Below are positions 63,037 through 64,000 of a stretch of DNA of 64,000 bases, in pieces. Under the pieces are notes generated by a model. It searched no databases, was not told where the DNA came from, and saw nothing but the letters and a program-made list of their open reading frames with translations. The stretch's first letter is position 1, and the number at the start of each line of letters is the position of its first letter. The DNA is taken from positions 62,001 through 126,000 of IMG/VR virus record IMGVR_UViG_3300005537_000001; one strand, written 5' to 3'. Both the position numbers and the translations under genes were made by a program.

Positions 63037-63596
63037 AAATAAATTATACCCAAAACCCACTCGCGACAACTATTGAGCTTAACGAAGTCGAAAAGAAGGA
63101 ACTGTGGTACAAGGTAAAGGTAGAGGAGCTAAAGGAACGGCTTTTCATGGCGTATTTTCGATTGAGCGATGGTGATATTGACTCTGCTAAGTCGGAGCTG
63201 GATCCCAAATATTATTCTGAAGATGCAGGTGGAAAGACACCTATCGATGCGCGAGTTGACGAACTTTACGGTTGGTATCTTAGCGAGCTTTCCGAAGGTG
63301 TGCATGGCGGTGACTGCACGTGTTCTGCCTGCGCGTGTCCAAAGTGTCACGCTGAACAGTTAATCGGAATCGACACCATGCCCGGTCTTGGAAAGCACAG
63401 CGCGTCCAAAATTATTCACGCGTTCACCGATACCAGAACTACCGCTAAAGACGTTGTCGCGCATCTGAGAAATAACCCGATAAAGGTAACCGAAGATTGG
63501 CACCGTGCGCACATCAACCGCTGGACGACTGAGCAGGCAGCCGCGATAGATTGGCTCGAAAATTATCGTATCAACATTCTAGGAGAAACACCATGA
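63018..63596 (+). CDS. hypothetical protein with Cys cluster
   Basis: HGGDCTCSACACPKC; GTG at 63033 likely start. Confidence 0.65.
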   Translation: MESTRVKINYTQNPLATTIELNEVEKKELWYKVKVEELKERLFMAYFRLSDGDIDSAKSELDPKYYSEDAGGKTPIDARVDELYGWYLSELSEGVHGGDCTCSACACPKCHAEQLIGIDTMPGLGKHSASKIIHAFTDTRTTAKDVVAHLRNNPIKVTEDWHRAHINRWTTEQAAAIDWLENYRINILGETP

Positions 63597-64000
63597 CGTA
63601 GAACCGGTCAATAACTCTCGATCACCTTCGCGAACAGATGCAAGCTTGTTTTCAGGCTCCGAATCTTAACATGTTGCAGCACGGAGAGATGGTTCATTCT
63701 CAATACGCACAGCTCATCGCAGCGCTCAACGCGAATGATACTCAGTACAAAGAACTTCGCGACGTTTATGCTCGGTATAGGGATAAGCTTCCCGCACCCG
63801 AAGTGCTAGAGCGCTATCATACATACCATGACTGCGGAAAACATCTCTGCGAGATTATCGATGGGTGCACCGGTAAGCGACAATTTCCCAACCACGCGGA
63901 AATTTCAGCCAAGCAGTATGCGACCATCTTTCCTGAAGATGGGTTTACGAAGCAGCTTATCGCCATGGACATGAACTTTCACATCCTGCGCGGTGATGAC
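63593..64000 (+). CDS. HD-domain protein with in-frame TAG at codon 3 (runs off window)
   Basis: AGGAG RBS, ATG ACG TAG; QHG...YHDCGK...NHA. Confidence 0.7.

Follow-up and report, generated by a model that had tools for sequence, protein, structure and literature searches.

The stretch of DNA analysed here (the window; 64,000 nucleotides) corresponds to bases 62001-126000 of the 368,054-bp IMG/VR virus record IMGVR_UViG_3300005537_000001, a jumbo phage genome from a soil metagenome with direct terminal repeats and 48% G+C that CheckV rated 100% complete. A cassette at the end of the window runs in the order tRNA-CUA, 90-aa open reading frame (ORF), gene A, gene B, gene C, 164-aa ORF and second tRNA-CUA. 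Gene A, encoding a PTH2-like protein with a predicted peptidyl-tRNA-hydrolase fold, and gene C, encoding an HD-type phosphohydrolase, each carry an in-frame amber codon (TAG) within the first four codons. On comparison of sequences, both TAGs are very probably programmed, gene-specific translational gates that depend on suppressor tRNA.

The first suppressor tRNA-CUA gene (62199..62272, +; 74 nt) was called by ARAGORN, matched Rfam RF00005 at 56.5 bits, and has an encoded CCA, a U1:A72 pair and discriminator U73. The second (78 nt) lies at positions 6682-6759 of L001 (L-numbers denote collected loci or records; L001 6249 corresponds to window-equivalent 64249), equal to window-equivalent 64682-64759 and 680 nt beyond the window end, and the genome encodes in these two genes tRNAs that match the in-frame stop. 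The initial annotation had described the ambers as lying beside the only suppressor tRNA, which holds within the window and fails for the genome as a whole. Gene A (62698..63036, +) begins ATG AAC GCC TAG and continues for 108 codons to a TGA at 63034-63036, with a Shine-Dalgarno (SD) GGAG (62688..62691, +) 6 nt ahead of the ATG. Its gate is codon 4 (62707..62709, +), the next base is G (codon GTT), and the first ATG, GTG or TTG after the TAG occurs 83 codons downstream of the 108; ordinary initiation therefore could not produce the protein. Gene C (phrog_14850; 63593..64000, +) runs past the window to window-equivalent 64249 and begins ATG ACG TAG, followed by 215 codons, with an SD AGGAG (63581..63585, +) 7 nt ahead of the ATG. 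This ATG (63593-63595) overlaps the TGA of gene B (63594-63596) as ATGA. The gate of gene C is codon 3 (63599..63601, +), the next base is A (codon AAC), and the two gate TAGs (62707 and 63599) are 892 nt apart. The AGGAG ribosome-binding site, the ATG overlapping the upstream stop, the ATG-ACG-TAG and the open frame behind it had all been noted in the initial annotation and were confirmed by direct reading. Gene B (63018..63596, +; 192 aa) lies between the gated genes and has no in-frame stop. From the overlapping or abutting genes, it is plausible that both gated genes belong to the same operon.

Relatives were gathered from a phage collection, from IMG/VR and from contigs encoding database homologues. 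Megablast of 62150-64000 against the phage collection gave no match, and relatives were detectable at the protein level only. In all, >30 distinct loci of phages shared the gate, with protein identity as low as ~35% and with variable codons on either side of the stop; gated isolates were CBB, BF, fHe-Yen9-04, ME3, Arash, RsoM2USA, XacN1 and pT24. On the PTH2-like gene it was present in this phage, L006, L007, L008, L020, L021 and L022, in CBB, BF, fHe-Yen9-04, ME3, RsoM2USA and Arash, in the metagenomic LR756511, and in ~17 more IMG/VR contigs. Its form was an SD, a start (ATG; GTG in two loci), 0-5 codons and a stop, which was codon 2-7: ATG TAG (L008, L020), GTG TAG (L097, L110), ATG AAG TAG (L006), ATG ACT TAG (ME3), ATG TTG TAG (RsoM2USA, L022), ATG CTG TAG (Arash), ATG AAG AAG TAG (L007), ATG ACG CAC TAG (BF), ATG TCT CAC TAG (fHe-Yen9-04) and ATG GCA CAA TAG (CBB), with ~12 additional variants. 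The HD gene had ATG-ACG/TCG/TCA/ACA-TAG in L006, L007, L008, L020, L021, L091, L094 and others, and an early TAG on the HD gene or on an HD/PTH fusion was also found in RsoM2USA, LR745206, XacN1, CM1 and pT24; the two gates of RsoM2USA read ATG TTG TAG and ATG AAA TCG TAG, and XacN1 ORF364 actually begins ATG AAG TAG. An internal TAG was present at codon 47 of the HD gene in CBB, BF and fHe-Yen9-04. In Arash, ME3 and L022 the HD gene had no TAG; it overlaps the gated PTH2-like gene there or comes immediately after it.

A purine-rich SD-like motif preceded the start in 23/25 tabulated gates and was missing in pT24 (host in Bacteroidota) and in the metagenomic LR745206. The base after the gate was a purine in 25/25 early gates (19 A, 6 G) and in 3/3 internal ones (G); after the ordinary TAG stops of long ORFs in this phage the count was 28/63 (44%). 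A purine after UAG reportedly favours amber suppression in E. coli, as Bossi in 1983 and Miller and Albertini in 1983 are said to have found. Synonymous sites in the near clade were close to saturation (pS 0.69), yet the stop was still kept. The evolutionary pattern of programmed suppression was found: the stop is conserved, its neighbours change and the downstream codons are under purifying selection (pN/pS 0.42 over the first 12 codons and 0.27 over the next 30). Conservation of the TAG, on which the initial annotation had made its reading depend, accordingly held in diverged phages.

Gate codon and suppressor anticodon went together. In most loci a tRNA-CUA (located in whole genomes with ARAGORN) was present, either a few kb or less from the gates or at another place in the genome: CBB had one, 3 kb from the gate, and XacN1 two in its terminal repeat. 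In L098 the tRNA-CUA, 200 nt ahead of the gate, was missed at ARAGORN defaults and found at a lower threshold. (Intron-allowing ARAGORN predictions in the low-threshold L098 run were discarded as noise. A pattern search of whole records for tRNA-CUA, YTCTAAA...GTTCRA, was also abandoned; it gave chance-like matches and missed the known XacN1 suppressors. The GenBank record of Arash labels its tRNA-CUA as tRNA-Phe.) RaK2 (8 tRNAs) and S-CBWM1 (36 tRNAs) had the PTH2-like gene with a plain ATG and zero tRNA-CUA genome-wide. In L112 the gates read ATG GAA TCG TGA (PTH2-like) and ATG ACA TGG TCG TGA (HD), and the record carried two tRNA-UCA and no tRNA-CUA; L111 likewise combined a TGA gate with tRNA-UCA and no tRNA-CUA. 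In both records the change of stop codon was therefore matched by a change of anticodon. By a homology-based count, no in-frame TGA was found in the other forward-strand genes of L111 and L112 that align to relatives, so that these records are not globally recoded. Where a tRNA decodes the gate, codon and anticodon are expected to switch together; the rival explanations weighed below carry no such prediction. This covariation appears to be the strongest evidence for the gate, and we take it as decisive.

The amino acid inserted at the gate was considered from alignments. Glutamine had been suggested by the homologues MSQIFA, MTQIFA and MKQNFA, and was dropped when at least one of them (P0041) proved to have been translated at source with TAG = Q. 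The TAG of L095 (..YSISC*IAAG.., in a subfamily with a longer HD N-terminus) aligns with Lys AAA/AAG in L097, L100 and L101, and several suppressor tRNAs look tRNA-Lys-like (A73, D-arm, variable loop); together these give a weak hint of Lys as the inserted residue in some lineages. The CBB TAG aligns mostly with V, L or I.

The product of gene A was identified by structure. Its AlphaFold model (pLDDT 90) has the predicted alpha/beta fold of PTH2, and Foldseek against the Protein Data Bank (PDB) returned 1q7s (human Bit1/PTH2) and archaeal Pth2 as its top matches, with 2zv3, 3erj, 1wn2 and 1xty also among the matches (E 3e-5 to 3e-4, TM 0.6-0.77, probability 1.0). Against Pfam the protein had no match at E <0.1, profile searches of both gated families against PDB sequences gave nothing significant, and a six-frame PF01981 search of the genome missed gene A and found only a weak ORF at 277507-277731. 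Invariant residues of the family are Q24, H27, E31, H43, S45, H48, E76 and Y78. The predicted structure thus points to a PTH2-like protein with the peptidyl-tRNA-hydrolase fold; the name 'PTH2-like' was preferred to PTH2 because the family hidden Markov model gave no match.

Gene C matched phrog_14850 (unknown function; E 8e-52) and had no match at E <0.1 in Pfam, HD families included. Its residues H27, H76-D77, H98 and D123 were invariant in 51 sequences and form the H...HD...H...D metal-binding pattern. The model (pLDDT 92) has the predicted all-helical HD fold. In structure comparison with VIA-align, in which helical folds inflate Z, the top match stood clear at Z 14.4 (160 residues, rmsd 3.0), to residues 250-448 of 3WFO-3WFS. 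This is a C-terminal HD-like domain; AFDB names O67911 an Aquifex CC-adding tRNA nucleotidyltransferase. The HD domain of GlyRS beta (Z 11) came next, and after it classical HD hydrolases (PhnZ, PgpH, PPX/GppA, YfbR and SAH), and every ranked entry at Z >=8 contains an HD domain. The HD-domain frame recognized in the initial annotation was in this way upheld by invariant residues and a fold match, although invisible to Pfam, and the models support tRNA-handling HD domains as the nearest structural relatives of the protein. The two enzymes were found fused in both orders, as HD-PTH in XacN1 and CM1 and as PTH-HD in pT24, and are therefore functionally tied and probably work together. A complex prediction for the PTH2-like and HD proteins scored 0.00 and counts neither way.

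Could the ambers belong to a genome that reads TAG as sense throughout, or to genes that are dying? Under whole-genome recoding (code 15, TAG = Gln, as in crAss-like and Lak phages), genes A and C would be two of many recoded genes. Suppressor tRNA-CUA genes are indeed present, and some source databases translate relatives with TAG = Q. Against this, TAG terminates 63/335 long ORFs of the phage genome (19%). In a dicodon coding-potential model, internal in-frame stops with coding potential on both sides numbered 5 (TAG), 17 (TAA) and 6 (TGA); every TAG case resembles an ordinary gene junction, so that neither in-frame TAG in many genes nor rarity of TAG as a terminator was found. No full-length release factor or GlnRS/GluRS-type synthetase was found in the phage. 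The gate is moreover confined to two genes: the whole 368-kb genome was scanned for an SD, ATG, 0-3 codons, a stop and an ORF of >=70 codons with no nearby start, and 3 TAG, 0 TAA and 0 TGA cases were returned, of which only genes A and C fit convincingly. The third (genome 237604, minus strand) was rejected as a gated gene, its real start being probably an ATG 10 codons on. There is scarcely any chance that recoding of this kind explains the two ambers. The same low standing applies to decay or artefact, in which the TAGs would have arisen by nonsense mutation in genes on their way to loss, or by mistakes in sequencing or assembly. Public annotations do call these genes fragments or omit them, and in seven GenBank records (L002, L003, L004, L010, L011, L014 and L018, those of CBB, Arash, RsoM2USA, fHe-Yen9-04, BF, XacN1 and pT24) the PTH2-like and HD genes were misannotated at the gate, being split, truncated or omitted. 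The cassette nevertheless recurs at 100% identity in a separate IMG/VR record (L005), and a read-derived Logan contig from a soil-metagenome run that may be the source sample is identical over 61900-64000, at k-mer depth 14.8 with zero variants. The feature is also present in the >30 distinct loci, independently sequenced isolates included, and behind the gates the ORFs are unbroken, conserved (mean column identity 62% and 50%) and confidently folded. Decay or artefact is thus already contradicted by the comparative data, and the judgement of the initial annotation that the early ambers are hard to put down to chance errors is sustained by the scan, the second identical record, the read-derived contig and the conservation in relatives.

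Two further explanations keep the stops as stops. In the first, ATG-ACG-TAG amounts to a very short ORF upstream, and translation of the HD protein begins at the in-frame ATG at 63638..63640 (+; Met13 after the gate) or at MLQHG further down, with no readthrough. This ATG was the caveat raised in the initial annotation. It exists, relatives retain its Met residue, the His-Glu-Ala codons of relatives yield a GAGG 3 nt before the equivalent ATG, and public gene calls begin at these internal Mets. In this phage, however, the sequence preceding it (CGCGAACAG) has no SD motif. The 12 codons from the TAG to 63638 are under purifying selection (pN/pS 0.42, pS 0.69) and are homologous to the genuine N-termini of plain-ATG relatives (P0083/L022), whose start is equivalent to 63593 (MKYENSLEELHLAM in L022). 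In the model they form most of helix 6-15 (pLDDT 97), which lies within the aligned HD domain and matches the reference domain from residue 2-4, and a start at 63638 would remove most of it. The TAG is invariant though the surrounding synonymous sites are near saturation; the PTH2-like gene, with no start for 83 codons, is outside the reach of this explanation, and the covariation of TAG/CUA with TGA/UCA is left unexplained. Bypass is therefore improbable as the main route, and what survives of the caveat is a possible minor alternative start without SD. The other explanation is start-stop or minigene regulation, in which a 2-4-codon ORF stalls or releases ribosomes, re-initiation follows at a non-canonical codon and the suppressors serve elsewhere. 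Minigenes cause peptidyl-tRNA drop-off. The SD-ATG-(0-3 codons)-stop has the minigene form, start-stop versions (ATG-TAG or GTG-TAG) occur in L008, L020, L097 and L110, and the product itself has the predicted peptidyl-tRNA-hydrolase fold. In the lambda bar-type minigenes that Hernandez-Sanchez et al. reportedly studied in 1998, an SD, a start, one or two codons and a stop are said to be linked to peptidyl-tRNA drop-off and Pth. Those minigenes stand alone and are toxic to hosts deficient in Pth, whereas the phage gates lead into a conserved in-frame enzyme ORF without a start of its own. The codon after the stop is no consistent near-cognate start (GTT, AAC, ATT, AAT, ACC, ATA); the gate stop always matches the resident suppressor anticodon, the TGA/UCA lineage included; the PTH2-like gene opens with a plain start in phages that lack suppressor tRNAs; and this mode of action is impossible for the internal TAG that CBB, BF and fHe-Yen9-04 carry at codon 47. 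Minigene regulation is accordingly very unlikely.

In the suppressor-dependent gate proposed here, ribosomes would start at the SD-led ATGs at 62698 and 63593 and meet UAG after one to three codons. Where charged phage tRNA-CUA outcompetes RF1, an amino acid would be inserted and the full-length enzyme made; without charged suppressor, only a di- to tetrapeptide would result. Release-factor action is weak on very short nascent chains, as known from minigenes, and the gate may exploit this. Output would need both the mRNA and a suppressor that has been transcribed, processed and aminoacylated, so that the arrangement would work as an AND gate of the coherent feed-forward type. With suppressor genes on both sides of the cassette, mRNA and suppressor probably rise together. 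Such a gate would delay, sharpen and cap the expression of both putative tRNA-acceptor-end enzymes, of which the HD protein resembles the tRNA-binding C-terminal domain of CCA/CC-adding enzymes. Three purposes, left unranked, may be suggested. The gate may serve timing and leak control. It may set the dose of the PTH2-like and HD proteins in proportion to suppressor activity, in a phage that also has tmRNA, an ArfB-like GGQ protein and a second PTH2-like ORF. Like the early stop of prfB, it may also provide negative feedback, should the two enzymes have the suppressor itself as their target.

Several points weigh against this account and are set out together here. Readthrough at the gates is deduced from comparative genomics, and aminoacylation of the suppressors by host synthetases is assumed. 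L101-L103 (IMG/VR 3300009768_000026 and copies) carry two tRNA-CUA and a PTH2-like gene with a plain ATG; in the HD gene of these records an in-frame TAG lies upstream of the conserved N-terminus, with no ATG within four codons. L113 has gates and no tRNA-CUA within the 20 kb fetched of its 389-kb contig. Some minor initiation at 63638 may occur, in the HD gene alone. If enzymes for tRNA repair are wanted just when tRNAs are damaged, it is odd to find them behind a gate whose opening depends on a charged tRNA that is still intact. The discriminator base varies among the suppressor tRNAs (U, A or G), which are a heterogeneous set. The gate lies at the non-conserved extreme N-terminus, so that the identity of the inserted residue is probably irrelevant, which fits the heterogeneous acceptor stems and discriminators. 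Beyond the gates themselves, we lean slightly towards a wider reading, namely that this is a self-contained conserved circuit of standard-code jumbo phages of soil, water and sewage (hosts in Gamma- and Betaproteobacteria and Bacteroidota), in which one or two suppressors mainly open the stop gates of the tRNA-acceptor-end PTH2-like/HD pair and UAG/CUA and UGA/UCA co-evolve.

The gates were compared with known systems. In recoded phages (code 15 or 4; crAss-like, Lak and other gut phages), a suppressor tRNA decodes in-frame stops while the host uses the standard code, and post-transcriptional timing of expression is the proposed role (bioRxiv 10.1101/2021.08.26.457843; PMC9523058). Those phages carry many stops in many, mostly structural or lysis, genes, and seldom end genes with the reassigned codon; this phage, by contrast, keeps the standard code and has exactly two gated genes with one early stop each, beside suppressor tRNAs. 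A synthetic coherent feed-forward 'leak dampener' built on a suppressor tRNA is described as reducing leaky expression of a regulated gene in E. coli (PMC7969014). The logic proposed for the phage is alike, in that the gene is read only with the suppressor present; the leak dampener is engineered, while the phage version would be natural, conserved across jumbo phages and reliant on host aminoacylation. In prfB (RF2), an early in-frame UGA makes expression depend on release-factor competition (PMC12421855). There the rescue is a +1 frameshift and the gene senses its own product, whereas the ORF downstream of each phage gate is in the frame of the ATG, a dedicated suppressor tRNA is present and product feedback is hypothetical. 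In their jumbo-phage survey, Iyer et al. 2021 treated PTH2 and CCA-adding enzymes as tRNA-repair and ribosome-rescue genes, CCA-adding enzymes restoring tRNA 3' ends; the wording 'suppressor' or 'stop codon' does not occur there, and amber appears in one reference title only (PMC7824862). That survey describes neither the HD partner nor the fusions nor the link to suppressors. In the XacN1 paper, the authors read through annotated amber stops and stated that they were unable to identify target genes (PMC5852040), and the RsoM2USA paper reported a suppressor tRNA and named no target (PMC8504454); both phages have the same kind of tRNA-CUA in standard-code jumbo genomes, for which targets are proposed here. 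A 2026 jumbo-phage survey discussed suppressors solely with alternative codes. No published description of the module was found in the full-text literature, whose coverage leaves out most subscription journals, so that an earlier report is possible. Suppressor-tRNA decoding in phages is known; the sequences compared make a strong case for a narrower form of it, a dedicated gate on two genes of a standard-code genome.

The remaining features of the cassette and its genome were as follows. The 90-aa ORF between the first tRNA-CUA and the PTH2-like gene (62285..62557, +; from the ORF listing) had no Pfam and no PHROG match. No family match was obtained for gene B, which is Cys-rich and contains CxxC...CxxC and an HhH-like motif (GIDTMPGLGKHSASKII). 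Its homologues occur in L006, L008, L020 and L021, and it is absent from L007/L019, where the PTH2-like and HD genes abut. TATAAATA, which has the form of a T4 late promoter, lies at window 62586-62593, ~100 nt upstream of the gated PTH2-like gene, and recurs at the equivalent place in L006 and L008, with AATAAATA in L007; as a late-promoter signal it was set aside, since 3 occurrences in the window against ~1 expected are not significant. Scans for sigma-70 promoters and terminators did no better than on shuffled sequences. The genome has 45 tRNA genes, both suppressors counted, and one tmRNA, with two big tRNA clusters at window 42836-55851 and genome 139898-145869. ARAGORN found neither tRNA-Trp nor tRNA-Phe in the phage genome, and one of its calls, 'tRNA-Ile(tat)', is 93 nt long with an odd long variable region. 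A ribosome-rescue kit is spread over window 28242-28646, genome 146734-147054 and genome 277507-277731, comprising the tmRNA (tag ANDAFFGEELRLAA), a 184-aa ORF with an RF-1/GGQ domain (ArfB-like, 62 bits) and the second, weak PTH2-like ORF (PF01981, E 5.6e-4). In CBB (KU574722.1), a candidate gate SD-ATG CTA TAG AAT lies at ~308297 (+), ahead of a 134-codon ORF with its first start 26 codons in, and may be a third gated gene there.

The suppressor tRNAs of standard-code phages had no known targets, and the same two genes are now proposed as targets across very different jumbo phages, several of the gate carriers being cultured phages, among them Serratia phage BF, Pectobacterium phage CBB, Acinetobacter phage ME3, Salmonella phage Arash, XacN1 and RsoM2USA. 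Protein databases carry N-terminally clipped or TAG = Q versions of the gated proteins. If the proposal is true, it would explain the 'orphan' suppressor tRNAs of XacN1 and RsoM2USA, and the phages would hold a natural one-codon, tRNA-operated AND gate on specific genes, unlike wholesale recoding. Such a gate would be a sensor of the balance between tRNA and release factor, and may couple the state of the translation machinery to counter-defence against host toxins that target tRNAs. The PTH2-like proteins and the CCA-enzyme-like HD proteins form a conserved, sometimes fused, candidate tRNA-end module that is of interest with regard to tRNA-targeting defence systems.

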